Below are positions 20,511-63,904 of a stretch of 64,000 nt of DNA, piece by piece. How positions within the stretch are numbered: the first letter of the stretch is position 1; each line of letters opens with the position of its first letter. This DNA comes from Selaginella moellendorffii. Taxonomy: Eukaryota > Plantae > Lycopodiophyta. Both the position numbers and the translations under genes were made by a program. Location: positions 324,719 to 388,718 of the forward strand of contig NW_003314373.1 of the NCBI RefSeq assembly GCF_000143415.4, written 5' to 3'. Under the pieces are notes generated by a model, which was not told where the DNA came from, made no database searches, and worked only from the letters and a program-made list of their open reading frames with translations.

Positions 20511-20963
20511 ATGACAGAGTTTGTTGTAGTTGTTTTCCTTTATTCATTTTTACTATATTTTCTTTTAGTTGGTGGGTATTTGCCAAGTGAAGCAACTCAA
20601 GATTGTATATCAATTGGTACACAAGATCCACCTTCTCCCCAAGCATATTGTCATGTAACAAATCTGTGTAAAGTTAGGTACTTTAATAATTTTTGGGAAA
20701 ATGGAGAATATACTGCCTCGGGAGGAGGAATTTATGTCACAATTACTGTTAATAGAATGTATAGTAGGGCATCAATTCAACAAGATATAGAACAAGCTTT
20801 TAATTTTATATGGATTAGATGTATATCAGTGCTACGTCAAATGGGTGGTTTTGTTTATTTGAATGATGGAAGTTTATCAGTTAATGTTCAGATTGCACGA
20901 AGAAGAGAGTTATTAAAAGATCTTGATAGAATTAAAATAACAAAAGAATGTTCATCTTTATAA
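20511..20963 (+). CDS. Small secreted protein, putative LDL/Y3-lectin or DUF26-like fold (copy 1)
   Basis: Intact 150-aa ORF in AT-rich DNA with hydrophobic signal peptide; frame conserved in copy 2 and homologous to the N-terminal domain at 58263-58670. Confidence 0.75.
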   Translation: MTEFVVVVFLYSFLLYFLLVGGYLPSEATQDCISIGTQDPPSPQAYCHVTNLCKVRYFNNFWENGEYTASGGGIYVTITVNRMYSRASIQQDIEQAFNFIWIRCISVLRQMGGFVYLNDGSLSVNVQIARRRELLKDLDRIKITKECSSL

Positions 20964-22742
20964 ATACCATTAATATTATAAAAAAATTATTATTTATAAA
21001 TTTAAAATAAAAATTAATAAAAGAATATAATCCAGAGTGTAGTATTTAAAACATATAATATAACAGATATTAAAACTATGATTATGATACATGACTTATG
21101 ACATAAAATGAAACAAACACAATATTAAGTGGTAGTATAGTTTGAAAAACAAAATATTTCCAAAATATTTTTTGAAATAAGATAGTTAGAGATATTATAA
21201 TTAAATTCATTAGTTTCAAAATAATTTACTATAGTTTCCTAGCAGCAATATCTGGTCTTCTTGGGGTTAGTTTCCAAGAAAAATAGTTAGAGAGGAGGAA
21301 TTTAAAAAACTACTCTTAAATCTTATAAGTTTTGATATGATAGTTTGATGATGATTAAACTTATACATATAAGGTAATAATTTGTTGCACATTACATGCT
21401 TTTAAGAATGTCATTGAAGTTATAATTAAAACTTGAAAACACTTTTTTCACATCATCCTCAATTTCCCATATAACCTCGTCCATAGAATAACCATTCCAC
21501 CAAACCAACAACTCCCAAATTGTCTTGCAATTTGTTTCACCAACCTTTAAAAAAAAAATTTGGTTAGATAAACTTTATTAGTATTAATCTTTGGGACCTA
21601 AAATTCACAACATCACTAGAGTACAAACATGTTTTAAACTTGCTTACATAAAATGTTGCATATGCAACAAAATTGTAGATAATACAATATAATATTGTAG
21701 AGACAATTTAGCACTACCCTTTTAGATATTGTTATGCATTTAATAGTTTAAGGAAAATTTTGTCACCAACTTTATATTTCTCATAATTATGATGTGCATT
21801 AGCCAATTTCTTGTTTCATTCTTGAACTTGTCTTATGTTCAACTTTGCCACTTTCATATCCTCAAAAAAATCACAAGTATGAGGCACTTAAACTAAAGAT
21901 AAAATTAAACTCATGAGAGACTTGGGCTTATAGCTATACATGACCATGAATAGAAACACGTAAATATCCAATTGATGAGTGTTATTATGAGCAATCTAAA
22001 GTCAAGGCAAATGATTCTCCCATACTCTTAATATCGAGTCAAGTTTTCCATAAAAGATTTTAGCATATATTCCAATAGCTAGTTTATAATTTTTATTTGT
22101 CCATTTGATTATGGATGTTTGCCACTAATTATACTCAGCTTATCTCTAACTTCTCAAAAATCATTTGCCAAAACTTATCCTCTCCCTTTAACCTATTTGG
22201 AAAGGGGGCAATTATTTAATGTGAGATATTTTAATGGCTATTTAATCCTTATATATCTTCTATACTTCCAAGAATTCACAACAACAATATATCTAAACTT
22301 CATCCCATGATCACATGTGTTACATTTAGTCAAAATGTTATGATGATATATTAAGGGCAGCTTTTAGGGGTCTGAATGTGGTTGTTATACTAAACCATAC
22401 GTTGGTCTTATTCATAAAATTCTTATATAAATTTATAAAAAAATTATTATATGTCAAGAATTAATACTGATAAAATTAAAATTAAAAAAACAAAAAAAAA
22501 GTACAAATACATGTTTAGTTTTCAATATATATCTTTATATATCTTTGTCTCATTCAATATTGGATGTTTTCTATAATTTATTGCTTCTTAACTATGAATT
22601 TATCAAAACTAAATACAAGTTTTAACTGTTTCAATTGTCCATACCATTGTTTTTGTAGAACTTTAAATGCTTTTATTTATAGCATCACTACAACATTTTT
22701 TAATTAATTTAAAATCTCATAATGCTTATATTACCTTCTTCT

Positions 22743-23147
22743 CTACTGAAATACTACATCATCATAACCATCATGTGAATAATCACCATCAAATGCCCAA
22801 TTTTCCCATCCATACCAACCTTTAGTTTTAAAATGACCATTACCAATAAATGATACACCATCAAATGGTACATTATTTATTATTTTAGAGCACTTTTCTG
22901 CTGATAGTGTATCATAATCAAAGTAAGCAAATTCATTACCTTTTCTCCATAAAATAACATTTGCTTTATAAACATTACAATTTGCAAGAGCAAATTTCAT
23001 ATCTGGAGCCCAATTAAAATTATCTTTTCCTTCAATGATTGTTACTGTATAAAGAAGTTATTAATTAAGGATTAAGTTCAAAATATTATACTTACACTGA
23101 TATATATTAAATAAAAATAAAAGATAGAACCAGGTATTAAAACCCAT
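22743..23147 (-). CDS. Small secreted protein, 117 aa, with G.F...G..GW.NWAF.G motif (copy 1); exons 23147-23096 and 23044-22743
   Basis: Exon 1 encodes the signal peptide MGFNTWFYLLFLFNIYQ; a 51-nt GT-AG phase-1 intron joins it in frame to LTIIEGKDNFNWAPDMKFAL...; structure conserved in three copies. Confidence 0.8.
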
Positions 23148-23999
23148 GAATAAAAAATATAGTAATAATATATAACTAGCTTAGTAATTTCAAGATATTT
23201 AATGTAATTTTAGGTATAAATTTATCTTTAAATAATATAAAGCTGACAATAATTACTAATACTTCCAAAAAGAATTATTTTGTTCAATAATTATAAATTT
23301 CGTCTATACTTGACATGTCAAATTTGTATTTTTTGTCACTCTAAAACAATAGTAGGCATACTACATGCCTAAAATTGTGTTAACATTTGTAATATGTTAG
23401 CAAAATACAAATGAATGATGTTTTTTGGTTTGCTTAAGCAACGCTATAGAGGAAGTGGGGTGGTACTGGATATACCTAGAATATTAAACACTTTCTAAAC
23501 ACTTTCTAGTATATTCTAGTATTCTACCATCTTGATATTAGATTAATCTTGTGTTTATAAATTATAAACATGTTTATAATTATAAAATTCTGATCAATTG
23601 GATTAATAAATAGGAATAACACTACTATTAAGCAAACCAAGCATTACTGCATGCAACACATAAAAAATTATTATAATTTATTACAATTCTGAGCTTATGT
23701 ATTTTAAGATGTCTCAATAATTATTATATTATATAATTATAGTTTCGAATGGATTATCTGTGAGAAATAATATGTTACTCTTTTTTAATTTAAATTCCGC
23801 TCTAATATATGTTTACTAATAACTCTCACTCCCAAAATTAAAGTAATACATGATTTCTATACTACAATTCTCATTAGATGGCAAATAAACTTCATAATAA
23901 TCAATGATGCTCACTTTGATGTTTTGTGTAGAGTCATATGGATATACCATAGTATATCCATATCTTCCCAAAGCAAAAACTCCTATCACTTAAGACTAA

Positions 24000-26292
24000 T
24001 CTAGTACTATAAGCCGAACTTTGTGGGCTGCCGGATCTGGCCAATCGGTGCCATCAGATGCAGGGTAAACTGGTAAATATCGGTTTCTTACTGCACATCC
24101 TTTTGAAATATTTTTGTGAGGTTTTGGGCCGGCCAGTGGGCATGCGGCACGGCCCCGGCTGGGGGAGGAGGTGTGAGCGACACCCGTCTGCTTGCCTGGT
24201 AAAGCTCTCTTTTTTTCACCACGGCTCCTCCCAGCCACGGGGTTTCCAGGGGAAGCGGGAGAGGGGGCACTGCTGCCCAGCAGCGACAAGGACAGGGGAT
24301 CACTCAGCGATACTGCATTCCCTTTTCCAATGGAAGGAGCCCAAATCGTCAGAGCAGGATTTTGGCGACGAGCAGCTGCAAAGGCGTGGCCGGAGGCATC
24401 GACAGGGAAGCAGTGGCTAGGGATTTTGCTGGAATGGATGGCGAGCAAGGGCGTGGCAGAGCCTGGGGGTGTGGATGTGAGGCACGGGAATTCCTATTTT
24501 TGATCCAGCAGAGGATTCGCTTTCATCACGTACAAAAGTGTTGACGACCCGAGGAAAGCCATAGATGATCCCAACAAGACAACAGTGGTAAGCTTACCCA
24601 AACATACCATGGTTTTTGCTGACGAGTCTATTCTTCCAGGGAATGCACATAATTGTAAAGTGAGCGGCAGATGGTTGGCTCCAGAGCGCGTGACGAGCAA
24701 GTGCTACATCATTGGAGTGGCTTTCTCCGGTGGTGATCGTGAAGACTGAGGAGAGCTTTCTCCACGGCGCACTCAGCAGCGATGGACTGGTGGATATGGC
24801 TGCCAAACTCGCCGAGGGAGTGAGCAGGATGGACAGACGCTTCATGGTGATGGAGTTTCATTGGCAATCCTCACAACTTCATTACGTCTTGGGGTCCATG
24901 AAGCTGGAAAAGAAGAAGAGTGGAAATTCGCTACTCCATGCATACGATGTTAACAAGAGCTTGGAAGACTTCCAATGCTTGGAGATGATCACAAGAGAGT
25001 TTGGAAGTTTTCAGAAGATCACAAGAGCTTCGAAGTTTTCTTTTTGCTACTGGATGATTTGATCAACCAAGAACTCTCTATTTTTACAGTTCATGCAGAA
25101 AAGTTTTTGATCTTTGGGAAAGATTCCACTCGCTGAAAACGCACTGAAAAAGTCCTCATTATAATGTAACGTGGGAGGAATGATGAGCTGGATCCAACAG
25201 CCAGTGAGGCTCCACGTTCCCGGCATTCATACCGGGGCTAGGGTTTTCTCCTCCTGGGCCTCCACGAAAAGGTTGCATCGAAAAGGTTAGTTTTTATGCC
25301 TGTCCATACCCTTTCTATCTGCCCTAATAATTGATCTCCATTTCCAAAAGAAGCTGTTGAAAATAATGTCGCACCTTCAACATGTATTGAATGCTATTCG
25401 ACACAGACATACACATTCCACATACAATGATAACGTTGAAAACACTAACCAGCACCAGCATACATATAGCTTTTACAACAGTAATATTCAAGAGGCTACA
25501 CAGTATTGACATCAAACAAATCTTAATAATCAAACTGAACAGCAGTCAATTTCCAATTCCTATTTGCCCCCTTCACCTCAGATTCACAGCACACTTGCTA
25601 GGAATTACTTATATATTGATACATCTGTTTTGACAATGAATATAGGTCCCTTATCATATATTTGTAAGTATTGTCATGCCTCACACTTTGCTGATGCGAA
25701 CAAGTCTATTTGTTGCCAGAGTGGACAAGTCTACCTGCCTCCAATACTTCTATTACCACCTTTTCTGTATTCTATGTATAACTCACACAAACACTCTAAT
25801 TTCAAGAGTAATATAAGACAATATAATAGTGCACTTGCTTTCACATCTATGGGAGCTAGCATTGATATTTTTACGGGTCATGGTCCATACTGCTATAGAA
25901 TTCATGGACAAATCTATCACAAAATTATGCCACAACATCCTTCAATACATCAAAATCCAAGTTACAGTCAATTGTACATGCTAGACTCCAATGAGGCTAC
26001 TGATATCAGAAAACAAAACCCTTTTAACATTATTTGTGATTATAATTTACTACTTCAACTAGATAAGATACTCCAACATATTAATCCATATGCACAAGCT
26101 TTTAGAATGATGTATGAATTGGAATGAGAAAATATTTCAAGAACTATTACTTCTGGTAGCAATTTACGTGGAGTATATATGCTCATTAAAAATGAAGGCA
26201 CAGACCATCGTTGATATAATACTCCACAAACTAATGATGTTGCATTAGTTTTCCAAAGTGAAGGTGGTGTGCCACCTTTTGACCGTGAAATA
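24000..26292 (+). mobile_element. Truncated, shorter Helitron copy (5' terminus, cargo, start of Rep ORF)
   Basis: A|TCTAGTACTATAAG start as at 30556; colinear with 34685-37400; Rep N-terminal motifs CKYC, CCQSG, NIRQYNSALAFTS. Confidence 0.8.
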
Positions 26293-26299
26293 TGGAGAA

Positions 26300-26719: not shown

Positions 26720-27018
26720 TGCTACACCAATTCACTCTTTTCGATTTGGGGTCTATCTTTACTTTACTGCTACACTCTTTTGATTTTGATAAAATTGATA
26801 ATTCTTGATCTTTTCGTTAAATAAAAGAATACTGATTGCTATGGAAGTTGGCCCCAAGCATGCTCTATTGTGTCTTGTTCTAGAACCCAGAATTATTGGG
26901 TTTGTCTTTTTTTTACTATAGCATTATTTTTAAAAGTTGTAATAACTAAGCATATCCTATTTTAATGCTATTTCAAAAGCCTTTATAAAGCAGATATAAA
27001 CCATTTCATACTTAGAGA

Positions 27019-27471
27019 ATGACAGAGTTTGTTGTAGTTGTTTTCCTTTGTTCATTTTTACTATATTTTTTTTTAGTTGGTGGGTATTTGCTAAGTGAAG
27101 CAACTCAAGATTGTATATCAATTGGTACACAAGATCCACCTTCTCCCCAAGCATATTGTCATGTAACAAATCTGTGTAAAGCTAGGTACTTTAATAATTT
27201 TTGGGAAAATGGAGAATATACTGCCTCAGGAGGAGGAATACATGTCACAATTACTGTTAATTCTATGTATAGTAGGGCATCAATTCAACAAGATATAGAA
27301 CAAGCTTTTAATTTCATATGGACTAGATGTATAGCAGTGCTACATCAGATGGGTGGTTTTGTTTATTTGAATGATGGAAGTTTATCAGTTAATGTTCAGA
27401 TTGAACGAAGAAGAGAGTTATTAAAAGATTTTGATAAAATTAAAATAACAAAAGAATGTTCATCTTTATAA
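27019..27471 (+). CDS. Small secreted protein, putative LDL/Y3-lectin or DUF26-like fold (copy 2)
   Basis: Intact 150-aa ORF with 12 aa differences from copy 1. Confidence 0.75.
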   Translation: MTEFVVVVFLCSFLLYFFLVGGYLLSEATQDCISIGTQDPPSPQAYCHVTNLCKARYFNNFWENGEYTASGGGIHVTITVNSMYSRASIQQDIEQAFNFIWTRCIAVLHQMGGFVYLNDGSLSVNVQIERRRELLKDFDKIKITKECSSL

Positions 27472-29493
27472 ATACCATTAATACTATGAGAATATATCAT
27501 TAGCTAGAAATTTAAAATAAAAATTAATAAAATCATATAATCCAGAGTGTAGTGTTTAAAATAAATAATAAAACATATATTAAAACTATGATAATGAAAC
27601 ATGACTTATGACATAAAATGAAAAAAATAAATATTAAGTGGTAGTATAGTTTTAAAAAAACATATTTCCAAAATATTTTTTAATATAAGATAGTTAGAGA
27701 TATTATAATTAAATTCATTAGTTTCATTGTGAGAGAAATAATTTACTATACTTTCCTAGCAGCAATATCTGGTCTTCTTTGGGTTAGTTTCCAACAAAAA
27801 AAGTTAGAGAGGAGGAATTTAAAAAACTACCCCTAAATCTCATAAGTTTTGATACGATAGTTTGATGATGATTAAACTTGTACATATAAGATAATAATTT
27901 GTTGCACATTACATGCTTTTGAGAATGTCATTGAAGTCATACCTAAAACTTGAAAACGCTCTTTTTACATCATCCTCAATTTCCCATATAACTTCGTCCA
28001 TAGAATAACCATTCCACCAAACTAACAACTCCCAAATTATCTTGCAATTTGTTTCACCAACCTTTAAACAAGAATATTAGTTAGATCAACTTTATTAACA
28101 TCAATCTTTGGGACCTAAAATTCACATCACTAGAGTATAAATATGTTTCAAACTTCTTTACATAAAATGTTGCATATGCAATAAAATTGAAGATAATACA
28201 ATACAATATTGTGGACCTTTTAGATATTGTTATGCATTTAATAGTTTAAGGAAAATTTTGTCAAACCAACTTTATATTTCTGATAATGATGATGTGCATT
28301 AGCCAATTTCTTGTTTCGTTCTTGAACTTGTCTTATGTTCAACTTTGCCACTTTCATATCCTCAAAAAAATCACCAGTATAAGGCACTCAAACTAAAGCT
28401 AAATTTAAACTCATGAGAGACTTAGGCTTATAGCTATATATGACCATGAATAGAAACATGTAAATATCCAATTGATGAGTGTTATTATGAGCAATCTAGA
28501 GTAAAGGCAAGTGATTCTCCCATACTCTTAATATCAAGTCAAGTTTTTTATAAAAGTCTTTAGCATATATTCCAATAGCTAGTGTATAATTTTTATTTGT
28601 TTATTTGATTATGGATGTTTGCCACTAGTTATACTCAATTTATCTCTAACTTTTCAAAAATCATTTGCCAAAACTTATCCTCTCCCTTTAACCTATCTGG
28701 AAAAGGGGTAATTATTTAATGTGAGAGTTTTTAATGGCTACTTAATCCCTATATATCTTCTAAACTTCCAAAAATCCACAATGACAATATATCTAAATTT
28801 CATCCCATGATCACATGTGCTACATTTAGTCAAAATGTTTGTGATGATATATTAATATCTCACAAATATGGTCCACATGTCAAAGTTCAATAGAAGTGAG
28901 ATATATATGATAATTAATGTTTTTTTCAAATTTTAAAAATTGTAAAATTTTAGTATTTTTTCCAATACAAATCAATCACTGCACTATTGTGGTAAATTCC
29001 AAATGTCTACATTTTAAAAAAACTGGAAAAAACATCAATTGCCTGATGAGTCTAAGAAAGAGAAAAGGATTGATTGATTCAGCCAGACTTAAGAAAAAAC
29101 AAATTGAGGGCAGCTTTTAGGGGTTTGAATGTGGTTGTTATACTAAACAATATGTTGGTAATATTCATAAAATTCTTATATAAATTTATAAACAAAATCA
29201 TTATATGTCAAGAATTAATACTGATAAAATTACAAAAAAAAACCAAAAAAGTACAAATACATGTTTAGTTTTTAATATATATCTTTATATATCTTTGTCT
29301 TATTCAATATTGGATGTTTTCTATAATTTATTGCTTCTTAACTATGAATTTATCAAAATTAAATACAAGTTTTAACTGTTTCAATTGTCCATACCATTGT
29401 TTTTTTAGAACTTTAAATGCTTTTATTTATAACATCACTACAACATTTTTAATTAATATAAAATCTCATATAATACTTATATTATCTTCTTCT

Positions 29494-29898
29494 CTATTGA
29501 AATATTACATCATCATAAACATCATGTGAATAATGACCATCAAATGCCCAATTTTGCCATCCATACCAACCTGTAGTTTTAAAATGACCATTACCAATAA
29601 AAGATACACCATCAAATGGTACATTATTTATTATTTTAGAGCACTTTTCTGCTGATAGTGTATCATAATCAAAGTAAGCAAATTCATTACCTTTTCTCCA
29701 TAAAATAACATTTGCTTGATAAACATTACAATTTGCAAGAGCAAATTTCATATCTGGAGCCCAATTAAAATTATCTTTTCCTTCAATGATTGTTACTGTA
29801 TAAAGAAGTTATTAATTAAGGATTAAGTTCAAAATGTTATACTTACACTGATATATATTAAATAAAACTAAAAGATAGAACCAGGTATTAAAACCCAT
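29494..29898 (-). CDS. Small secreted protein with GW.NWAF motif (copy 2), 2 exons
   Basis: Same ATG, intron and frame as 22743-23147. Confidence 0.8.
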
Positions 29899-30994
29899 GA
29901 ATAAAAAATATAGTAATAATATATAGCTAGCTTAGTAATTTCAAGATATTTAATGTAATTTTAAGTATAAATTTATCTTTAAATAATATAAAGCTGACAA
30001 TAATTACTAATACTTCCAAAAAGAATTATTTTGTTCAATAATTATAAATTTCCTCTATACTTGACACGTCAAATTTATATTTTTTGTCACTCTAAAACAA
30101 TAGTAGGCATACTACATACCTAAAATTGTGTTAACATTTGTAATATGTTAGCAAAATGCAAATGAATGATGTTTTTTGGTTTGCTTAAGCAATGCTAAAG
30201 TGGGGTGGTAGTGGATATACCTAGAATATTCCTGGATATTTTAGGATATTCTACCACTTAAGTGTTATTCATTTAGATTAATCTTGTATTTATAATTTAA
30301 ATAATTGTATTTAGAAATAATATGTTACTCTTTTTTAATTTAAATTCTGCTCTGATATATGTTTACTAATAACTCTCACTCCCAAAATTAAAGTAATACA
30401 TGATTTCTATACTACAATTCTCATTAGATGGCAAATAAACTTAATAATAATCAATGATGCTCACTTTGAGGTTTTGTGTAGAGTCATATGGATATACCAT
30501 AGTCTATCCATATCCTCCCAAAGCAAAAACTATCATACTTATCACTTAAGACTAATCTAGTACTATAAGGAGCAAACGCCAAACTTTGTGGGCTGCCGGA
30601 TCCAGCCAATCGGGGCCGTCCAATGGGGGGGTAACTGTTAAGGGGTTATTTCTTTAACCACGTGTTAGCAAATAATCACGCTGATGTTTGCTCCTGGCCA
30701 ATGGGAGGCAGCCAAGCCATGTGTGGCGGGAGAGGAAGGCCCGACGACGCATGTCACATGCAATATGTTGACTGTTGTTGTCTGTCAAGCGAATTAGTTT
30801 TGTTTTGTATGTTTTTCTAGGGTTTATGAGACAGCGAAAGAGCCCCTGCCGCTGCTGCCAATTCACGATCCAAATCGGAGGCGCTGTGTCAACGCTGGTG
30901 TCTTTGCTCCTGAGAACCATCGCAAGTTGCTATTTGTCATTCTTCTTTCATAACTTTGGTATTCTCATACACGATGTGTCTCTGCTTTTGGCTC

Positions 30995-34250: not shown

Positions 34251-34510
34251 AAGTACTATACACTTTCATTTCATGTTCCATAGTGTGTTTTTCTTTTTTG
34301 TTTGTATAATATACTGTCTATAAGCTTGCTACATAGTTGTATTTGAGATCAATTGTATTATTACAACTTCAAAGTCTCTTGCAAGAATCTCAGCCAAAGC
34401 AGGTATGCCAATCATCTTAGCGACTTCTTTAAAATGTAACAACACTGCCTCCACCACATATTTAACACTATTTCATATTTCTCTTGCAGAAAAGAAAAAT
34501 GTGATAAGAA

Positions 34511-34684
34511 CCTTCCTGTTTGTTTGAGCATGTCCATCATCTTGGTCTGGAAAACTGGATCCACAACCTCCACGCTGACACCAGTGCCACTCTGCGGCAT
34601 CGCAAAAACATCGATGACTCGGACAGTGTACTCATCCATAAAATCACCTAGCATGAGACCCATAACTTCCATTGGCACACCAGC
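34511..34684 (-). pseudogene. RPN11: Captured exon of 26S proteasome subunit RPN11
   Basis: [56 protein letters not shown] followed by a GT donor-like site. Confidence 0.92.
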
Positions 34685-36277: not shown

Positions 36278-36335
36278 ATGGCACTCGCAGTGAGGTAGCA
36301 AAAATGTAAGTCTTGCGAGAAGACACTGTATCAGG
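36278..36335 (+). pseudogene. Captured N-terminal fragment of a plant two-LIM-domain protein
   Basis: MALAVR*QKCKSCEKTLYQ versus the typical MAFAGT.QKCKACEKTVY. Confidence 0.55.
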
Positions 36336-36476
36336 TAACACACATCAATCTGCTCCTTTTTGGCATGCATCGAAAAGGTTAGTTTTTATGTCTGTCCATA
36401 CCCCTCAGTAAATATCTTTTGCTTTCTATCTGCCCTAATAATTGATCTCCATTTCCAAAAGAAGCTGTTGAAAACA

Positions 36477-43535: not shown

Positions 43536-43687
43536 GCTGTCTAGACCCTAAACATTGTTTAAAAAGTTAGTATATTTTTTATTTCAAGCTAAAGGTATTT
43601 TTAATATTAATAATCAATGGGAGGTTAGCCATAATTTAGTTAAGATTGTGCATTTTCCATTAATTTGATTATTACCAAGTCACTCTT

Positions 43688-46600: not shown

Positions 46601-46846
46601 AGCCTCAAGAAAGGAATTGTTTCGCTGCTGCTGGAGGACTCTCCTCCTGGAGAATTCTAGCGAACCTGTGGCGGTGGTGGTGTTCCAGCTGCTGGCGGTG
46701 GACGTGAGCTCCAGGCCGGAATCGAATGCCGCGAGGAGCTGAGACCGCAAGGTGTGTGAAACCCCAGTGTTGGTGCACATCTTTCCATGGCCAAGCGGGC
46801 AGAGGAGTGGCAGCAGAGTGAGTACCAGGAGCGAGAAAGGGATCAT
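43688..46846 (-). CDS. Secreted GH127 (beta-L-arabinofuranosidase-like) protein with C-terminal AbfB-like region, multi-exon
   Basis: YGGWE...ELRGHFVGHYLSA, WAPYYTIHK, ETGGMND, HANTHIP, ESCTTYNMLK, FWCCYGT; signal peptide; short introns. Confidence 0.92.
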
Positions 46847-47107
46847 CGTTCGCCTTCTAGACTTCCTGGAAAAGAAACAAGAAGATCATGGAAAGATCAA
46901 GCTTAAGAACAAGCAAGGATGTAAATAAAAGATCCTAAAAAGAGAAAAATAAGGAGAGAAACCCCTTGTCTGGTTTCGATGATGCTGCATTATCCTCTAG
47001 CGCAATGATCCTCCATTCCTTGGAATGCAAGGAAAGCTACCATCACAAACCATCTCCACTCTCGATGCAATCATAAACTTTGCTTCTTTAGATAGCTTCT
47101 CAAGAAA

Positions 47108-47770
47108 TTGCATGATCATTCGAGTCCAAGACCTCCTTTTTGCATGGATGATTGCCTCAGGCTTATTGATTCTTGCAATACACTTTCTTTTGCTCGGCAG
47201 ATTCGAGCTCGTCTTGACTGTGCCGGCACTGTGTTTATCTCCAACAAGCTCATTGAGATGTTTGGCAGGTGTGGTGGAGTGCAAGATGCCGAGAGTGTCC
47301 TCTATGCGATGGACAAGAGGGATCCCTTCTCGTGGGATGCAATGCTCCTGGCGTATACGAATAACTCTTGGCTGACCCAGGCAAGGGTTTTCTTTTTTGA
47401 TCTAATGCCGGAACAGAGCCTCATTGCCTGGACTGCAATACTCGTGGCACATACCCACACAGGTCACCACTGGTTTTTGTCGATGCAAGCTGACTTTAAC
47501 GTCAAACCCAACCAGCGGCACTTTTGTTGTATGGTTGATCTTTTGGGACGTGCTAGCTATTTGGTTGATGCAGAGGATTTAATTGCTAATATGCCCTTTG
47601 AGCCGGATATTTTAGAGTGGACGTGTTTTCTTGGAGCTTGCAAGAGTCACAGCCATGTTGCATTTGGAACTAATGCAGTAAAGAATGTGCTCGACCTTTG
47701 TCCTAGGGGTGAAGCTCCTCAAGCGTATCCTTTGCTTGCAAATTTAATTGGTCAAAATCTGGCTTTTTAG
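47108..47770 (+). pseudogene. PPR gene with a large in-frame internal deletion
   Basis: Matches 56011-57780 but lacks 1128 bp between two ACCCA microhomologies. Confidence 0.85.
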
Positions 47771-47820
47771 TAACTCTTTTGCTTTAAAGAGATGTTATAT
47801 GATAATTTATTTTAGACATG

Positions 47821-48650
47821 TCAATGAGAACATAACTTATCACTACCTAATGCCCACCAAACATTGTTAGGACGTTTTTCAGAGTATATAACTACATTAC
47901 AATCATTTTGAATAGTAAAAAATAAAGTGCAACAAAGGAATTTACAAAATTGATTAATTTCCCATACTGTTTTCTCTATTAGATTTAAAATAAGATTACC
48001 ATTGTTTTGAAATTTCAACATACAATTATAACCATATTGTGTAGTACTTGATTCCCAAATTTTATTTCTTTCAAAGTACAAAACAAGGTTGCAATGTGAT
48101 TCAAGAATAAAAACAACTTTACCATTTGGAGAAATTAAAAAGTGATCTGTATAAAGTGTTGAAGGATTACTTATAGAATTGACTTCTAAATAACAATTAG
48201 AATTATAATAATATTTTCTTTCTAATAGAGATATATTTTCTTTTTTAGATATATGTAAATCTGTAATTTGAACCATAATCTCAAGACTTCCATCATATAA
48301 TATAACATAGCCAACTTTGTTTTCCTTTTTATAAAACAGTTACTGAAAATAAATTTTAGAGCTTGCTCAAAATCATGTTGTATTTCTTCAAAGCTTACAA
48401 TTTTTAAGCTTAATGTAAATGTAAAATTTATGTTATTTCAGGAAAATTTATATATTTTATTTTCTATATTATTTCTTAACAGTATATAGCTAATGTTTAA
48501 GAAGTTAGAGTAGTCTTGAGGTGAAGGCATATTATGATGAGTAGAATTAATAACACATTCTTGAATAGATCTATTAGATACATATGCTTGACATTCATAA
48601 AAGCTTAGAATAATAATAAATAATATCAATATTGCCATTTTTATCTCCAT
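47821..48650 (-). pseudogene. Secreted LDL-like domain + bulb-type (GNA) lectin fusion, disrupted copy
   Basis: Signal peptide; TGA stop at 48438 and a 1-bp deletion near 48320; lectin motifs ESHCNLVLY, QNNGNLILN, QNDCNVVIY. Confidence 0.8.
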
Positions 48651-50399
48651 AATATAAATATAATTGTATCATATATAAAAGTATATCCATTTTAAAAGTA
48701 ATATTTCACTTTTGGTTTAATGCACCAAACAAAATTTTATTGTCTCCAATATAATGATATGTATAATAGCACATATCCTAAGAATATAATCATCTGACTG
48801 ATGTAGAGAAAAATGTTCACTCCCACTCTTCTGGGAAATTGTATGGATATAAACAGTGATTAAATAGTATATATATATATATATATAAAGAGAGAGAGGT
48901 TAATTTAAAGTGTTGCATATTATTTAGAAACTTTTAAGTTTTTTTTTTCTATACATTATCCTTAGTTTTTATCCTTTTATGCCAACATGCTGTACCATGC
49001 CATTGATCAAATTCCATGTTGCTTGAGACTGCCTTTTATTTTATTATCCTCACCTAAAACATTGCTCTTACTATCATATCACTAGATATTAGATATGTCA
49101 TGAGGTGTAATTTATTAGTGTTATTTTGTATATATGCTTAAGATGGATAAAATCTTGGAGCGTTGCTATATCCATCTTTTGTGGGATGTGATTATGAAAT
49201 TTCTCTTACTTTTAAAATTGTATTACTATTTGAAATTAATATGAGTGTGATCAGTTATTTCTTAAATTCAAAGGATCAAGTTTGTGAGAAGATGATGTCT
49301 GAGCTCAATTTAATTAATGAGTTCAATAACATTAGAAACAAGTTAAAGATTTCCTAAGATAATTAATATCACTCCTTAATTTTGTCTTTTGATTCTTTTA
49401 TCTCTATCTTCTTAATTTTTTCCATTTGTTCTCCTTTCTTGATTTTTTATATTTATCCTTAAATCTATAGTCTTTTCTTCCCATATTTTTTCTAGTGTAT
49501 GTGTTGATTCACAGTTTAAAGTTTTTTATTTAAATATGTCATCACTAGTAATGAGTAATCAAGTAAACTGTTGCAAATCAAAATAGAAAATGAAGAGGAA
49601 TTTAAGTATAACTTAGATTTAGAGAAATTAAATATGCATTTAAGTGAATTCTCTCTAAATTTATATAATTTATATGTTATTTTTTTTACTCACAATTAAA
49701 ATATAAATAAGTTATTATTCTACCAATCGAATAGGCTCTTTGGCACACAGCCAAGAATGCGGTGGACATGGAGATGATAAAGCCATAGTACCAACATGAT
49801 TTATTAGACACTTCTTTATTAGACCCATGTTGCACTTACAAAGGGAATTGGGATGAGGTGTTAACTATCCACAAGGTGATGACAAAAAAAAGATTGAGGA
49901 AAAAAATTAAGAGGACCTTAATCATGGTGAAGAATAGGTTACATGAGTTCATAGTGAGCAATTGCAATCATTTATGGTGGGACTCAAATGGTTAAAAAGG
50001 CTTATCCAGCCATAATGATAGAGGATATAGGGAATGGTGACCCATAATTTGGGCAAGAAGGATTTAGTGTGTTGTAATAACAAGAAATTTATAATGGCAT
50101 TTGGATGTTGAGCACACTACCCAAAAACTTTGCTGTGCCCAAGGAAAGAATTGCCCAAGCTTCAACAAGTGCCTAGCCATGCTATTCATGTTAAAGAGGG
50201 TACTATCAATTTTGGTAATGAAATATTTAATCTTTCTAGTGTGTATGATGACAAAATAGTAGTGCTTAGGTGTTTTTAACATTATATAATAACAATACAA
50301 TTATAAAAACATCTTCTTGAAAACAATTGGAACATGTATACTATCTATCATACCCCATAACTTATTCAAACCATCATGTAAATGGTTAAGTAATAAAAA

Positions 50400-52500
50400 T
50401 CATGTATAACCCTAAAGTAATAAAAACTTTTATATAACGTTTATGTGATATGTAAGACAAGAAAAAAAATTCATGACTTATAAGCATAAAACCCATCAAT
50501 AGAAGCAAAAAGGATAAGAAATAAAGACATGGCTTGAATCATAAGGGAAAATTTGTTATAAATGAATAATAAAGATCAATGCAATTAATAATAAAAATAA
50601 ATAATTTTTTTAAACTTATAGTATAATAAAATTGTGGATGAAATGAACCACCAAAGAAATAACTTTAGAAAAAATTTATAGTGTTCACACTTTATGAGAA
50701 ATACACCAATTTAAATGAGTTATAGGGCAGCCTCTTTATCTAACATAAATGCGCTACAACTTAGACACCTTTCGACTATCACAAACAAGGAAATAATTAA
50801 TGGAATCAGCCACCTTTATTACTTTAAGTGTCATCCACTTTATAAAAAATGATATACCCTTACCTATAGGTGAAATAGAGAAAGAAGTAAAAGCCCCAAC
50901 CCTCATCAGCAAACAAACCAAGCCCATTAGTAAGGTTTATATAAACTACTATAAATAGATAGTTAGAGAGCCATAGCCTTTTAAACAAAATTAAGAATAT
51001 TGAGAGAAAGGCAAATGATATGATTAATAGACAGTAGCTACCATATGACTAGAGATTTCATCATGCATATAATGTGCTAAAACAAATTTACTTATATTAG
51101 CCCAAACCCAAAGATCACTAAATGGATAAAGTTAAATTGGAAAATGAATAGCTGCTTGATGAGAAAGTCTTTAGTGATTATTTATCCCCATTTATCCCCT
51201 AAAGTTCCAAGGATTCATGATGATAGTATATCCAAATTTCATCTTATAATCACATGTGTTACAGTCATAGGAAAAAATTAGTTAGTCTAAATAAATCTTA
51301 ATTAACAATACAAAAGAATCAGAGTTGCTCAAGAAAGCATTAATAATATCTTACCGATAACTCAAACTCAAGAGACCAAACCAAAATAAACTACAAACAA
51401 AAAATACATAGTAATGTAAAAAGCCAAAAACCCTCAAAATAACAACTAACCATCACAAAAATTGTCAATCACCCTATTAAGAAAGGTGCATAATCATTAT
51501 CAAAGAATGGCAAAGCATCCAACATCAATAATAATTAACAATATTTTAACAAAGATAATTAATTGTTATAAATGATATTACTAATAATTGCTAAATGTGG
51601 AAGCTAATTTGAACGTCAAAGCTAATGAGCCAAAATATTTTCTTTAACAACTTTTAATAAATAGAATAATGAATATGAAAACTCAAAGAACAAAAGTTTG
51701 AAGAAGCTTATAGCCAAGGCTCGTATAACAATAATTATAAGTCTTGCATGAACTAACTTTAATGCAAAAAAAAAAATCATAGTACAACCCATAATATCCT
51801 CATCAACACATCCATAAGCTAAATTTTATAATGCAAAGCTAATGAAAATCATATTTATATCAATTCAAAAACTAAACACAATGAAGTTATGCTTAACAAC
51901 TAACTAGCGTACCAACACTAGCTTAGCATAATGGATCATCTTTAAGACCTTGTCAAAGCTACTACAATGCTACTACTTGCAAGTAGATTAATTTCACCAT
52001 CAACCATTTTGGGGTTAATTATAGTTTGACCAAGCAACTTTATAAATACAGTCCTTACGATCATGATATAATAGTCACAATTATTTGATCATCAATTGAG
52101 CAATACCACAAACAAAATATATATCACTATTACAAATATTTATATGAGTATTAAGTGTTAACTCTATTTGACAAAATGCAACATAAATACCATCCCAACC
52201 AATAGAGATCTATGACACTTAACACCAACAACAATACCACAAATTCATACCCTTCTCTTTCCAGCGGAACTCAAAATTAATCCAACATAAAACTACTTAA
52301 GGAGAAATACTAAGGATCCTTGGAAAGAATTAAGCATTATAATTCAAGATTTCCAATAACAAGCTTAGACAAAATGATTTAATGCTTCACCACTATTTAT
52401 TTTATGACTCACCACTTGTAAAGCTATCATAACCAATATGTATTGAAATAAGAAGTCTCAATATCATGATATGAGTATAAGTAATGAGATCATATCTTGT
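50400..52500 (-). mobile_element. Heavily decayed retroelement, possibly a LINE
   Basis: Strand-skewed AT-rich DNA with only faint LFADE- and DYAPF-like remnants and no ORF. Confidence 0.25.
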
Positions 52501-53680
52501 TGCAAACCTGTGTCTAAATATGCAATTTAGTGCAATTTCATATTTTATAAATTTTTGTGATTATCCCAGAAACTTCCTAAAAAGAAAAGATGATTTACAT
52601 GTTTAATCCTTTGTCTTTAATGACTCTCTCTTCAGACTCAACTTTGACTAAACTTCTAGCTTGTATTCATACTACGTTTAGTTCAATTCAAAAAAATTTA
52701 TTAGAGAGCACGACATTGATTACTTGAACCAATAGATTAATCCCTATAGTCTTGATTGATGTACTTATAATCATGCTTAGGTAAGATCCATTAGTGCCAG
52801 CCTATTTACCACTTATAACAGATCTAGAGAAGTTTATTTTTACCCATAGTAATATGGAACAACTCATGATAACCACCGATAGGTTAACATTAATTCTGCC
52901 AATTCAAAATGTAACTTTAAGTTACTAATGCATCTCACTTATGAGCCCAAGCACAAACTCATGCAAATGGTGCATAAAAAATCCATTTTATAAGCCCAAG
53001 TGAAAACTCATTTAATATAGTATGACAAAGTAACCAAAATCCATACCTAAAAGATATATATAAAGATATAGCAACTAAACATGTAACCCACTCAAATTTT
53101 TGTTTTCATTTTTGCATATGCAATAAGATTAGTTGCCCACATATTGCCTTGGACTCCCTTCATGTGAGGCTCGTTTAGCTTCTCGAGGCTGCCGTATGTG
53201 GCTGGGTCATGAGGGAGGCGAGAATGACACAGACCATGGGAATATTTCAAGAATATTCCATGGCTTATGGGATTTAAGGCCGTAACGCCTTAAGGGTTGA
53301 GAGGTTGGCCTAGGGTTCACTCTTCTGTTTGTTTCATTAGTGTTAGAGCAATCTTATTGGATAATACTTGTTAGGACATATTATTTGATATTAAATAGTT
53401 TTCACCTTTTACCTTATAATGATTTAACATAAGATAACCATGAAATGGAACTTAAACCCTTGAACACATAGGTCAAAGGTAGCAAAGTGGAATTCAAGTT
53501 TCAGGATCTTGGGCCATTGAACAAAAGGATAGAACCAAACTCATGAGTATGTAACTAAAGAGTAAAAGAATTGAAGCATAAAATGACTTTTAAGCATACA
53601 ACACAAGGAATAAAAGGATATGAGCATAAAGTGACATTATAATAATGTTAGAGCATCCAACATTTTAATGCCAAGACTAA

Positions 53681-53975
53681 TATAATGCTTTATTTTGTTA
53701 AAGTGGAACTTATTCAGTAAAGTGGGACATTAATTAGCATGTGTCCACATGCCATTTCCTAGTACTTAATTAGTATTTATTAATATTTCTATCGGTTTTT
53801 TAATTTATTTTTTATATTTCACAATATTATAACACAAAATCATATGAAAAGTTTTTAATTTATAAATTATAAAGCTAAAACTTCAATTTTTTATTGTTGT
53901 TATAAAAATGGCATGTGGCCATACACCATAAGTGGGATAATGAAAAGTTCCACTTTAACAAAATAAAGCATTATA
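53681..53975. mobile_element. MITE-like element, 295 bp
   Basis: Perfect 30-bp terminal inverted repeat TATAATGCTTTATTTTGTTAAAGTGGAACT plus inner inverted CCACATGCCATTT. Confidence 0.8.
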
Positions 53976-54752
53976 CAAAATAACATTAAACAAAGTTTAG
54001 CATACCATCTCCAAATCCCTATCTTCCCTCATGCCTATCATGTTTAGCACCCATTGCTTACTAAAATACCAATTTATTTTTCTCCAAAAGCATGTCTACC
54101 AACCCTGGTTTAGATTTGAGATTGGAGGTAACAATATGGCCATAAAAACTATTCAGTAAAAGTTAAATAAAAGTGAGTTATATATAAAATTATACAAATA
54201 CAATATTGGCATTTCACACAACATAAATCAATTGCTGCAGTATTATGGTAAATTCCAAAAGTCTATATTTTTCTAGATTGGAAACAACACCAATTGCCTG
54301 ATGAGCTCCTTTAAGAAAGAGAAAAGGATTGATTGATCCAGCCATACTAAAATTGAGGGCAAGTTTTAAGAGTTTGAATGTGGTTATTATACTAAACAAG
54401 ATATTACTATTATTCATATAAGTCTTATATAAATTTATTTTAAAATTATTATATGTAAAATTTTATTACTGATAAAATTACAAATAGAAAAGAAAAACAA
54501 AAATGCACAAAAACATATTTAGTTTCTAATGTATATCTTTATATATCTTTTGGTCTCATTCAGTATTGGATGTTTTCTATAGTTTCCTGATGTTCTTAAC
54601 TATGACTTTATCAAACTTGAATACAAGTTTTAACTGTTTCAAATTTTTTATACCATTGTTTTTTAAAACTTTAAAATGTTTTATTCATAACATTCCTACA
54701 ACATTTTAATTAATAAAATAAATCTCATATAATGCTTATATTAGCTTTTTAT

Positions 54753-55158
54753 CTATTGAAATATTACTTCATCATGATTATCATGTGAATAATGACCACT
54801 AAATGCCCAGTTTTGCCATCCATACCAACCTTTAGTTTTAAAATGACCATTACCAATAAATGATACACCATCAAATTGTACATTATTTATAATTTTAGAG
54901 CACGTTTCTGCTGCTAGGGTATCATAATCAAAATAAACAAATTCATTACCTTTTCTCCATAAAATAACATTTTCTTGATAAACATTACAATTTGCAAGAG
55001 CATCTTTCATATCTGGAGCCCAATTAAATTTATCTTTTCCTTCAATGATTTTTGCTGTATAAAGAAAGCCATGAATTAAGGATTAAGTTCAAACTATTAT
55101 ACTTACACTGATATAGATCAAATAACAATAAAAGATAGAACCAGGTATTAAAACCCAT
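54753..55158 (-). CDS. Small secreted protein with GW.NWAF motif (copy 3, most diverged), 2 exons
   Basis: ATG, GT-AG intron and frame intact; flanks 54200-55425 are homologous to 28960-30170. Confidence 0.8.
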
Positions 55159-55429
55159 GAATAATAAATATAGTAACAATATATAACTAGCTTAGTAATC
55201 TCAATATAATTAATGTAATGTTAAGTACAATTCTATCTTTAAATACTATAAATCTGACAATAATTACTAATACTTCCAAAAAGAATTATTTTGCTCAATA
55301 ATTATAGATTTCCTCTATACTTGACACGTCAATTTTGTAGTTTGTCACTCTAAAACAAGAGTAGGCATACTGCATATCTAAAATTGTTACATTTGTAATA
55401 AGTTAGCAAAATACAAATGAATGATATAA

Positions 55430-55746
55430 TCGAGCATGAGCAAGTAGTCGAGATTGGTTTACTGCGCAGTTGCCTGCCACGAGTCCGGCAAAAGCCTCAC
55501 GTCGTGCAGTGAAACAGCCCCAAGAAAGGAATTGTTTCGCTGGACTCTCCTCCTGGAGAATTCTAGCGAACCTGTGGCGGTGGTGGTGTTCCAGCTGCTG
55601 GCGGTGGACGTGAGCTCCAGGCCGGAATCGAATGCGGCGAGGAGCTCGCAAGGTGTGTGAAACCCCAGTGTTGGTGCACATCTTTCCATGCCCAAGCGGG
55701 CAGAGGAGTGGCAGCAAAGTGAGTACCAGAGCGAGAAAGGGATCAT
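55430..55746 (-). pseudogene. Duplicated, frameshifted exon 1 of the GH127 gene
   Basis: Copy of ~46515-46846 with small deletions. Confidence 0.9.
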
Positions 55747-56010
55747 CGTTCGCCTTCTAGACTTCCTGGAAAAGAACCAACAAGAAGATCATGGAAAGAT
55801 CAAGCTTAAGAACAGGCAAGGATGTAAACAAAACATTCTAAAAAGAGAAAAATAAGGAGAGAAACCCCTTGTCTGGTTTCGATGATGCTGCATTATCCTC
55901 TAGCGCAATGATCCTCCATTCCTTGGAATGCAAGGAAAGCTACCATCACAAACCATCTCCACTCTTGATGCAATCTTAAACTTTGCTGCTTTAGAAAGCT
56001 TCTCAAGAAA

Positions 56011-57782
56011 TTGCATGATCATTCGAGCCCAAGACCTCCTTTTTGCATGGATGATTGCCTCAGGCTTATCGATTCTTGCAAGACACTTTCTATTGCTCGG
56101 CAGATTCGAGCTCGTCTTGACTGTGCCGGCACTGTGTTTATCTCCAACAAGCTCATTGAGATGTTTGGCAGGTGTGGTGGAGTGCAAGATGCCGAGGGTG
56201 TCTTCTATGCGATGGACAAGAGGGATCCCTTCTCGTGGGATGCAATGCTCCTGGCGTATACGAAAAACTCTTGCCTGACCCAGGCAAGGGTTTTCTTTTT
56301 TGATCTAATGCCGGAACAGAGCCTCATTGCCTGGACTGCAATACTCGTGGCACATACCCAAAAAGGGCATCTTGTTGAAGCCAAATGGCTGTTTGAAAGT
56401 ATGCCTTTTAAAGACATAGTAGCATGGAATGCCATGATAAGCGGGCTTGCTCAGCACGGTCACTTAAGCAGCGCTGAGATACTCTTTGACCAAATGCCGC
56501 AAGTTAATCTGGTCACATGGAATGCCATGCTTACGGCATATGCCGCAAACGGGCATCTTGAAAACGCATACCACCTTTTTAATCAAATGCCGGAAAAGAA
56601 TTTGGTGACTTGGAATGCTTTGCTTTCGGCTTTGGCACAAGCTCGACACATTACTGGCCTACAAATTGTGTTCAATCAAATGCCACTGTGGAATCTAGTT
56701 TCTTGGACTTCGGTGCTGACCGCATATTCAATTGACCGACATTTTGAAAAGGCTGAGCTGACTTTTAAGGCCATGCCCGTATGGGATTTGGTTGCCTTCA
56801 ATGCCCGGCTGACAGCCTCTTCTCAAAACGACTCTTATGAGAAAACAAAGAGAATGTTTGAGAAGATGCCAGAGCGTAACTTTGTCTCTTGGAATGCAAT
56901 GCTTTCAACGGCTATTGCAAGCCGCAATCTTGATTCCGTAAATTCATTGTATAATAACACGCCTCAGCATAGCTTTTATACTTGGAATATTGTTTTGGCT
57001 GCATACACACACTATGGCCTTATGGAAAAAGCAAAGGATATGTTTGAGACGATGCCGGAGGAGGATCTTATTTCTTGCAACACTATGCTTTCTGGATATG
57101 CCCAAAACCGGAATCTAGAGCTTGCCAAATTCATGTTTGATAGAATGCCACAAAGGGACCTATTTTCCTGGACTGCTCTTCTCTCTGTTTTTTCACAAAA
57201 TGGCTTTATTCAGGAGGCTACTAGTGTGTTCTACCAAATGCCAAAGAAGGACTTTGTTGCATGGAGCGCCTTTCTTTCAGCACATGCCCGAAACGGGCAC
57301 CTTTTATACTGTAAGTTGCTATTTGAAGAGCAAGATTTAGTGTGGAGTGCAATGTTGTCTGCATATGCCCATAATGGTCACTCTAAAGAGGCCATTGATC
57401 TTTTTGATGCCATGAAACTCATGTCTATACCCAATGACATATGTTTTTTATCTGCTCTTCTCGCTTGTAGCCATGTTGGAAAAACCCACACAGGTCACCA
57501 CTGGTTTTTGTCGATGCAAGCTGACTTTAACGTCAAACCCAACCAGCGGCACTTTTGTTGTATGGTTGATCTTTTGGGACGTGCTAGCTATTTGGTTGAT
57601 GCAGAGGATTTAATTGCTAATATGCCCTTCGAGCCAGATATTTAAGAGTGGACGTGTTTTCTTGGAGCTTGCAAGAGTCACAGCCATGTTACATTTGGAA
57701 CTAATGCAGCAAAGAATGTGTTCGACCTTTGTCCTAGGGGTGAAGCTCCTCAAGCGTATCCTTTGCTTGCAAATTTAATAAA
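56011..57782 (+). pseudogene. PLS/E-class PPR gene with a premature stop at the start of the E domain (544-aa ORF)
   Basis: TAA at 57643-57645 where the paralog has TTA; the E-domain frame continues afterwards. Confidence 0.8.
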
Positions 57783-57845
57783 TCTGGCTTTTTAGTAACT
57801 CTTTTGCTTTAAAGAGATGTTATATGATAATTTATTTTAGACATG

Positions 57846-58670
57846 TCAATGAGAACATAACTTATCACTACCTAATGCCCACCAAACGTTGTTAGGACGT
57901 TTTTCAGAGTATATTACTACATTACAATCATTTTGAATAGTAAAAAATAAAGTACAACCAAGGAATTTACAAAATTGATTACTTCCCCATACTGTTTTCT
58001 CTATTAAGTTTAAAATAAGATTGCCATTGTTTTGAAATTTAAACATACAATTATAACCATATTGTGTAGTACTTGATTCCCAAATTTTATTTCTTTCAAA
58101 GTACAAAACAAGGTTGCAATGTGATTCAAGAATAAAAACAACTTTACCATTTGGAGAGATTAAAAATTGATCTGTATAAAGTGTTGAAGGATTACTTATA
58201 GAATTGACTTCTAAATAACAATTAGAATTATAATAATATTTTCTTTCTAATAGAGATATACTTTATTTTTTAGATATATGTAAATCTGTAATTTGAACCA
58301 TAATCGCAAGACTTCCATCATATAATATGACATAGCCAACTTTGTTTTTCCCTTTTATAAAACAGTTACTGAAAATAAAATTTAATGCTTGCTCAAAATC
58401 ATGTTGTATTTCTTCAAAGATTACAATTTTTAAGCTTAATGTAAATGTAAAATTTATGTTATTATAGGAAAATTTATATATTTTATTTTCTATATTATTT
58501 CTTAACAGTGTATAGCTATAGGTAATGTTTAAGAAGTTAGAGTAGTCTTGAGGTGAAGGCATATTATGATGACCAGAATTAATAACACATTCTTGAATAG
58601 ATCTATTAGATACATATGCTTGACATTCATAAAAACTTAGAAGTATAATAAATAATATCAATATTGCCAT
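57846..58670 (-). pseudogene. Secreted LDL-like domain + bulb-type (GNA) lectin fusion, one in-frame stop
   Basis: 135-aa ORF, then TAA at 58263-58265 (GAA in the paralog), then an in-frame lectin domain to 57846. Confidence 0.8.

Positions 58671-63901: not shown

Positions 63902-63904
<3 letters not shown>

Follow-up and report, generated by a model that had tools for sequence, protein, structure and literature searches.

A 64,000-nucleotide stretch of the Selaginella moellendorffii genome (contig NW_003314373.1, positions 324,719 to 388,718; hereafter the window) contained seven loci from two families of small secreted-type proteins, designated A and B, all in AT-rich DNA. The explanation that we favour, with somewhat better than even confidence, is that these are long-resident secreted protein families of antimicrobial type that undergo birth and death within methylated repeat islands. 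The antimicrobial function is proposed, because it is drawn from fold and homology alone; predicted structures, homologies, duplication history, base composition and absence of RNA are results in their own right. An initial annotation of the window had interpreted the loci as a co-amplified, possibly horizontally acquired module of secreted, microbe-like proteins. The secreted-type and microbe-like character of the families was upheld, while the co-amplified module and the use of AT-richness as a sign of transfer were not.

Seven loci of two secreted-type families

All seven loci listed initially were present, with intact frames in five (A1, A2, B1, B2 and B3). Of the loci listed as LDL-like, those at 47821 and 57846 were likewise found, but these coordinates proved to be the lectin ends of two minus-strand genes, F1 and F2, in which a family A domain is fused to a lectin and both of which are broken. 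The loci were as follows.

A1, 20511..20963, plus strand: intact single-exon gene, 150 aa, signal peptide and predicted Gnk2/LDL/Y3/KP4-fold domain; zero RNA reads
A2, 27019..27471, plus strand: tandem-duplicated copy of A1, 92% aa identity, no indels
B1, 22743..23147, minus strand: exon 1 23096-23147, intron 23045-23095, exon 2 22743-23044; zero RNA reads
B2, 29494..29898, minus strand: copy of B1; exon 1 29847-29898, exon 2 29494-29795; exon 2 94% aa identity
B3, 54753..55158, minus strand: older copy; exon 1 55107-55158, exon 2 54753-55054; exon 2 84% aa identity
F1, 47821..48638, minus strand: signal, family A domain and GNA/bulb lectin; frameshift near 48323
F2, 57846..58670, minus strand: same fusion; in-frame stop at 58263-58265

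The window corresponds to scaffold GL377677.1 of assembly GCA_000143415.2 (window positions 1-16715 match at 100%), a PPR protein that it encodes is listed in a public protein collection under Selaginella moellendorffii, and an allelic scaffold, GL377589.1, was 97.5% identical to the window over its gene-rich start. Protein searches for family B were made with exon 2 alone, and the broken fusions were searched as separate pieces. The open reading frames (ORFs) of A1, A2, the F2 N-terminal part and B1 exon 2 had no exact-sequence match in the same collection, and A1 and B1, the two searched in this way, had no close relative in word-indexed protein searches; the genes at the seven loci, those of families A and B included, thus appear to be unannotated. 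Contamination of the assembly was rejected because the genes were also found on contigs of a 2024 DNA run with the same species label, contain a plant intron and share their duplications with fragments of host genes. Mis-assembly of haplotypes is improbable, given that the duplicates differ by 4-14%, as opposed to 2.5% between allelic scaffolds, and that gene ends are truncated.

Predicted fold of family A

A1 and A2 were 150-codon ORFs with a hydrophobic N-terminus of the kind expected of a secretion signal (judged from its hydrophobicity), and no stop-free run of 150 codons appeared in 300 shuffles of island DNA. The AlphaFold model, made from three sequences, was of low confidence (predicted local distance difference test, pLDDT, 52; core approximately 60) and had the order helix, two strands, helix, two strands, with the two helices packed on an antiparallel sheet that could be superimposed on solved members of the Gnk2/LDL/Y3/KP4 superfamily. 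When compared with 48,161 chains, its top five matches were Y3 (Z 7.0), LDL (6.8), PDLP8 (6.5), PDLP5 (6.4) and Gnk2 (6.0), with Zt-KP4 at Z 5.2-5.3 and root-mean-square deviations (rmsd) of 2.8-4.3 Å across 79-95 residues. The top full-length matches all came from this superfamily, and the sole unrelated chain with Z above 5 had an rmsd of 6.5 Å and covered half of the domain. Foldseek also ranked Gnk2, PDLPs and Zt-KP4 first, none of them reaching E 0.001, and a language-model search gave an Hce2 cluster as its lead (0.84). Thus, the original description of these loci as LDL-like was borne out at the fold level, by the Z of 6.8 to LDL and by the agreement of Foldseek and fold comparison on the same superfamily.

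At the sequence level, family A gave no Pfam match (including DUF26/Gnk2 PF01657, KP4 PF09044, Hce2 PF14856 and LDL PF18647), no NCBIfam match and no match to PDB sequences, including LDL and Y3. Neither the C-X8-C-X2-C motif of DUF26 nor the KP4/Hce2 cysteine pattern was found, only two cysteines being conserved across A1, A2 and F2, one near the start and one at the end of helix 2, and the one search made for a homologue outside Selaginella, a word-indexed protein search, found none. Because the DUF26 motif and Pfam matches are lacking, family A was assigned to the fold and not to DUF26, LDL or KP4. The model weakly suggests that family A has the fold of the superfamily that includes Gnk2/DUF26, LDL, Y3 and KP4; the tied fold scores and the lack of an outside match favour neither descent from DUF26 by degeneration nor derivation from a fungal gene.

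The members of this superfamily differ in activity. Gnk2 is an antifungal mannose lectin, DUF26 resembles the LDL and Y3 lectins, and PDLP5, which shares the family A type of fold, did not bind mannose (PMC6368629). Zt-KP4-1 slows fungal growth, and Gnk2-domain proteins group with the KP4/Ecp2 structural superfamily (PMC12382754). Like the secreted Gnk2/DUF26 proteins (CRRSPs, PF01657), family A proteins are plant, secreted-type and made of a single small alpha/beta domain (Z 6.0-6.6), but they lack C-X8-C-X2-C and a Pfam match, are 12-15% identical and also occur fused to a GNA lectin. The fungal lectins LDL (PF18647) and Y3 are likewise secreted and were the best structural matches (Z 6.8 and 7.0), yet family A has no PDB or Pfam sequence match to them and fewer cysteines, and the likeness is one of predicted fold. 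With the KP4/Ecp2 superfamily (Hce2, PF14856) family A shares the Zt-KP4 fold match and the Hce2 language-model lead; unlike that superfamily it has no KP4/Hce2 Pfam match or cysteine pattern, and it is not of the moss KP4 type.

A motif RRRELL was noted in the C-terminal tail of A1 and A2, similar to the RR(L/I)LQ of fern family B proteins described below and possibly a processing site.

Fusion of the family A domain to a lectin

The N-terminal domain of the fusions was approximately 36% identical to A1 (tblastn E 5e-12). In F2 the signal and family A domain remain open as a 135-aa remnant (58263-58670), much like A, while the lectin part (57846-58259) is cut off and retains one intact QxDxNxVxY site. 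The lectin part matched solved GNA-type lectins (best E 7e-15; gastrodianin E 1e-14) and, under the cut-off, Pfam PF01453 (E 4e-5). It resembles GNA/bulb lectins such as gastrodianin in this match and in one complete QxDxNxVxY mannose site, and it differs from them in that the other two of the three sites are degenerate, in its position C-terminal to a domain of predicted Gnk2/KP4 fold and in that the local copies are broken. Comparison of F1 with F2 indicated purifying selection on the lectin part (pN/pS 0.16, P 0.002) and on the N-terminal domain (0.32, P 0.05); the fusions therefore broke recently. The initial annotation had taken the fusion as support for a carbohydrate-binding role. For the lectin domain this holds, in that its sequence indicates that it can probably bind mannose; sugar binding by the LDL-like domain is not thereby supported, and both copies are broken.

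By eye, the C-terminal tail of A (20940-20963) weakly resembled the linker that joins the domain to the lectin in F (58240-58285), within which the stop of F2 lies. Single-domain A genes may, on this slight resemblance, arise by truncation of fusions.

Family B and bacterial YvgO

All three family B genes had two exons, a first of 52 nt that encodes the signal and a second of 99 codons, separated by an intron in phase 1 (51-52 nt; donor GTAAGT, acceptor TACAG). The model of family B had a pLDDT of 89. Among solved structures no fold relative was found (best Z 4.0), and PDB sequence, Pfam and NCBIfam searches were blank. The best atlas match of the fold was a Bacillus YvgO/DUF7888 cluster, with a template-modelling (TM) score of 0.74 over 87 residues, followed by two mostly basidiomycete clusters (TM 0.68). 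Fungal DUF7888 is represented here by atlas clusters.

An exhaustive HMMER search with family B found a distant Selaginella paralogue, LOC112347667, and one protein of Ceratopteris, and a profile search extended these to two species of Adiantum and to metagenome fragments of plant-like type; no close relative outside plants was found among 1.84 billion proteins. Five long repetitive HMMER matches were rejected as low-complexity. The plant profile led to a cyanobacterial ORF and from there to 53 plasmid records (Bacillus, Priestia and Streptomyces "stress proteins"). Plant and bacterial profiles aligned in HHalign at 96.3% (E 1.6e-9), with a C-terminal GWxNWAFxG motif common to both. We take this bacterial set of "stress" and hypothetical proteins to be YvgO, on the fold-cluster match and the motif. 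Family B had no match to the PF25411 profile, nor did a bacterial member, so that the Pfam copy used probably lacks the model.

The predicted fold and profile alignment indicate that family B, whose fold is modelled with confidence, is a plant branch of bacterial YvgO/DUF7888. It shares with Bacillus YvgO/DUF7888 (PF25411) the same predicted fold and a colinear alignment across the plant domain, including the G-x-F-x3-G-x2-G-W-x-N-W-A-F-x-G end. It differs in lacking the bacterial N-terminal extension and first helix, in identity (19-27%), in its spliceosomal intron and in forming a plant branch with ferns. Thus, family B is microbe-like, as the initial annotation had proposed, in having a bacterial relative, YvgO, with reported antifungal activity (TM 0.74, HHalign 96.3%): YvgO of B. 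thuringiensis is listed in reviews as antifungal against Byssochlamys fulva (PMC8703302, PMC9755354).

Further observations concerned relatives of family B. In fern proteins the pro-region ended in the RR(L/I)LQ motif before the mature domain. Scaffold GL377588.1, at 3745-4030 of the stretch examined, carried a decayed second copy of LOC112347667, approximately 6 kb from the intact gene and without the GWYG-NW end. On a plasmid-like Nostocales contig, a YvgO-like ORF (2689-3159) with no obvious signal peptide adjoined an integrase gene, and its YGYENWGF end was nearer to the plant motif than the Bacillus end is. The cyanobacterial relative had no phage match, and B1 had no direct plasmid match. 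Short contigs of several metagenomes, probably from host plant DNA, also carried family B genes of plant-like character that were near the fern type.

Duplication history

Self-alignment of the window resolved three separate duplication events, which involved the following blocks.

19791..24076: tandem unit 1, TSC10 5' part, A1 and B1; unit 2 is its sister or was copied from it, with blocks of 90-93% identity
26319..30641: tandem unit 2, dead TSC10 fragment, A2 and B2
46514..48887: duplicated block, GH127 5' part, PPR and F1; its sister is 55429-58718 plus 63708-63920, 95-96% identity
55429..58718: sister block, dead GH127 fragment, PPR with a stop and F2
54187..55425: B3 block, 1.2 kb, B3 alone; 86-87% identity to the B1 and B2 blocks; it ends where the GH127 duplication has its breakpoint

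The two tandem units are separated by a piece derived from a Helitron (24056-26294, which resembles 34687-37405), and the sister block of GH127, PPR and F2 was later split by a long terminal repeat (LTR) retrotransposon. In agreement with the initial annotation, the co-duplicated TSC10, GH127 and PPR pieces were broken: besides being truncated, the TSC10 fragment lacks 22 nt; that of GH127 contains a stop in addition to deletions of 1, 5 and 9 nt; and of the PPR copies, one has an internal deletion and another a stop.

The two families did recur together, as had been noted, but with one independent A and B pairing only, since A1-B1 and A2-B2 stem from a single tandem duplication. The identity of A to F is approximately 36%, whereas that of B3 to B1 is 84%, so that the neighbourhood of F and B3 is not a copy of the A-B pair. 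With one co-duplication, B3 in a separate 1.2-kb block and the fusions moved with GH127/PPR DNA, the proposal of a co-amplified two-family module was not supported. No family A gene was found within 10 kb of the other Selaginella B locus, LOC112347667, which together with this window was the scope of the test. On this sequence evidence the case for a two-family module is weak. Both families may persist, and be copied, in DNA of this kind, which would explain their presence in common islands without a working pair.

Base composition of the islands

As initially observed, all seven loci lie in AT-rich DNA, in segments of 26-28% GC compared with 45-51% in gene-rich DNA. The observed/expected ratio (o/e) of CpG was 0.08-0.35 in these segments and 0.6-0.9 in gene-rich DNA. 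The islands, and a relic within one of them, were as follows.

20254..24012: AT-rich, CpG-depleted island, GC 0.26, CpG o/e 0.19
26754..30568: AT-rich island, GC 0.26, CpG o/e 0.11
47740..55430: AT-rich island, GC 0.26-0.28, CpG o/e 0.08-0.15, except for a 193-nt GC-richer blip; contains F1, a PPR-DYW relic and B3
57771..59143: AT-rich island that holds F2 and the left LTR
49789..49992, plus strand: decayed native PPR E/DYW-type tail, GC 0.35, no CpG; E 0.001 to synthetic PPR-DYW; internal control for CpG loss in place

In the codons of A and B, GC content was 0.42-0.44 at first positions (GC1), 0.30-0.37 at second positions (GC2) and 0.10-0.15 at third positions (GC3), and CpG was nearly absent. 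The difference GC1-GC3 was approximately 0.3 in both families, as opposed to a maximum of 0.19 in intergenic windows, and this codon-position asymmetry indicates that A and B are long-standing coding sequences whose mutation is biased towards AT. The paralogue LOC112347667, which has the same signal exon and phase-1 intron, lies in a housekeeping neighbourhood and has 49% GC (GC1 0.44, GC2 0.40, GC3 0.61); its GC3 of 0.61 compares with 0.11 in island B. Third-position AT drift, a GC-normal paralogue that shares the intron and a native PPR relic that is equally CpG-depleted thus leave composition no argument for recent transfer, contrary to the initial interpretation of AT-richness. Repeats are methylated in Selaginella moellendorffii (PMC2442089), and methyl-cytosine deamination in repeat-rich islands would be the simplest cause of the AT-richness, methylation at the loci being presumed.

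A further AT-rich island (14506-16134; GC 0.29, CpG o/e 0.09) between P450 and PPR fragments contained no long ORF, and the allelic scaffold differs in structure around it.

Origin of family B

In the family B tree, plant sequences formed one side of a branch with support of 100/99, and the island copies paired with the Selaginella paralogue (87/88). Placement of island B with the cyanobacterial sequence was rejected (p 0.002), while placement with all bacteria, apart from other plants, was not (approximately unbiased test, p-AU 0.19). The tree was built without fungal sequences and so points to no particular donor; its branches are long, and one B. mycoides row, which was truncated, was set aside. 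Island B was 33-43% identical to plant and 19-27% identical to bacterial sequences. None of the features of a recent transfer (greater closeness to microbes, lack of a host-type intron, foreign composition) was found in family B, and its spliceosomal intron, its position nearer to plant than to bacterial sequences and its fern homologues run counter to a recent date for the horizontal acquisition suggested initially. An ancient microbial acquisition before the lycophyte-fern split may nonetheless have taken place. A and B look like old plant genes copied piecemeal in AT-rich repeat DNA.

Neighbouring genes and repeats

Other features near the loci included the following.

18865..20215, minus strand: short-chain dehydrogenase gene, called TSC10-like in the initial annotation (adh_short in Pfam), expressed and spliced
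23419..23657: short repeat of very high copy number that has TG...CA at its ends and inverted repeats in sub-terminal position, resembling a miniature inverted-repeat transposable element or solo LTR; approximately 270 nt upstream of B1
58722..63709, plus strand: LTR retrotransposon with gag and reverse transcriptase, LTRs 90% identical; inserted approximately 50 nt upstream of the F2 start codon

In one sequencing run, contig depth at 23419-23657 and at 22163-22339 was 5e4-1e5 compared with approximately 200 for single-copy DNA, and homology between B3 and B1 stopped exactly at the edge of the 23419-23657 repeat. A decayed Helitron with Rep and Pif1 pieces occupied 36366-41245, its left part, plus sequence from 34687, being copied at 24056-26294; a JAB/RPN11-like exon fragment was noted at 34412-34678. 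Two convergent intronless PPR genes, 2644-4491 (plus strand) and 4475-6715 (minus strand), overlapped at their 3' ends by 17 nt (4475-4491).

Discussion

The favoured explanation, that secreted antimicrobial-type families persist by birth and death in these islands, would work as follows. Small local duplications would occur in methylated, repeat-rich islands, where C-to-T loss pushes third codon positions to A or T. By analogy with Gnk2/KP4-fold proteins, family A would act in the cell wall on fungi, binding a fungal surface target and slowing growth, and in the fusion form the GNA lectin, with its one intact mannose site, would anchor the family A domain on mannose-rich microbial glycans. 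Family B would be a secreted antifungal protein in the manner of Bacillus YvgO. In ordinary tissue the genes would be inactive; either infection or a special cell type would switch them on, or individual copies would be silenced. The sequences thus suggest birth and death of gene copies, with present activity of each copy left as a proposal.

Several results weigh against this explanation. In three 2026 RNA runs from one study (tissue unspecified, approximately 12% of each run read), no reads were found at 20393-24100, which covers A1 and B1, although the TSC10-like neighbour, a positive control in the same runs, gave spliced reads at a depth of 7-56 up to approximately 20215. Absence of transcription, which the initial annotation had named as evidence that would count against it, was therefore what these three runs showed for A1 and B1. 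The test was aimed at A1 and B1, with F1 and F2 outside its coverage; at 90% likeness it should have caught reads from A2 and B2 and most of those from B3 as well, and AT-rich transcripts may be under-sampled. The dN/dS ratio among A and B copies was 0.7-0.85, on few changes, and indistinguishable from neutral. The family A model is of low confidence (pLDDT 52), and Z below 8 can reflect a common arrangement. Moreover, a shared fold, here a predicted one, by itself shows no function, as the case of PDLP5 illustrates (PMC6368629).

Some of these results would fit a rival explanation, in our view rather unlikely, that the copies in the window are silenced, recently dead or dying duplicates whose frames survive because they are short and young, with working members elsewhere, for example LOC112347667. 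The lack of RNA on A1 and B1 and the dN/dS near 1 agree with it, as do a nucleotide divergence of A1 from A2 (4.0%) as fast as that of the dead TSC10 fragment (3.9%), the breakage of both fusions, the repeats just upstream of B1 and F2, and an absence of indels in A that is only borderline (P 0.06). Against it, exon 2 of B contained no indels where 4-6 were expected and flanks had 10-13 (P 0.02 and 0.003), start codon, intron signals and phase were kept in three of three B copies over 8-9% divergence, and the codon-position asymmetry points to lineages that were coding while they drifted to AT. A further reading, improbable though less so than wholesale transfer, is that genuine proteins are made somewhere but serve outside the cell in something other than defence, for example in the wall of spores or gametophytes, in abiotic stress, or in signalling like that of PDLP/CRK DUF26 or moss KP4 proteins. 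PDLPs use the same fold in signalling (PMC6368629), and in moss, KP4 changes the calcium gradients of the cells (PMC12382754). The annotation of bacterial B relatives as "stress protein" is in keeping with such a role, and absence from three RNA runs fits narrow cell-type expression. However, for each of the three domains the closest relatives that have been characterised are antifungal, and defence genes typically show rapid sequence turnover, changes in copy number and fusion to lectins.

The reading given in the initial annotation, a two-family module that arrived horizontally in the form of AT-rich foreign DNA and was then amplified together, is very improbable. A and B do lie approximately 1.8 kb apart twice, B3 does lie between F1 and F2, both domains have microbial relatives, and the tree did not reject island B with bacteria apart from other plants (p-AU 0.19). 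These points are countered by the single co-duplication and the separate movement of B3 and F, the lack of a family A gene beside the other Selaginella B locus, a spliceosomal intron common to the GC-normal paralogue, the greater identity of island B to plant (33-43%) than to bacterial (19-27%) sequences, the CpG-less native PPR relic and the absence of a close non-plant relative among 1.84 billion proteins.

A more far-reaching form of the antimicrobial birth-and-death explanation, which we regard as speculative and unlikely, is that Selaginella keeps an unannotated arsenal of infection-inducible antifungals in AT-rich, methylated islands comparable to the compartments in which fungal pathogens keep their effectors. 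Such an arsenal would include a YvgO-type protein obtained from microbes before lycophytes and ferns parted, together with a cysteine-poor domain of KP4/Gnk2 fold that also has a lectin-targeted form and could link the fungal lectins LDL and Y3 to plant DUF26.

The fern-lycophyte branch of YvgO appears undescribed: DUF7888 was unmentioned in the literature searched, and the YvgO papers there indicated no such plant gene by title or abstract. The value of the findings is limited by functional inference from fold and by the zero RNA reads on A1 and B1. If the prediction for family A is correct, a plant protein with the Gnk2/LDL/KP4 fold but without the DUF26 motif bears on the question of whether DUF26 and the fungal lectins reflect shared origin or convergence (PMC6368629). 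If active, the proteins would be new natural antifungals of approximately 100 residues that are easy to test. The loci illustrate, in addition, that annotation can miss real genes where the DNA is extremely AT-rich and depleted of CpG, and that such genes can pass for foreign islands.

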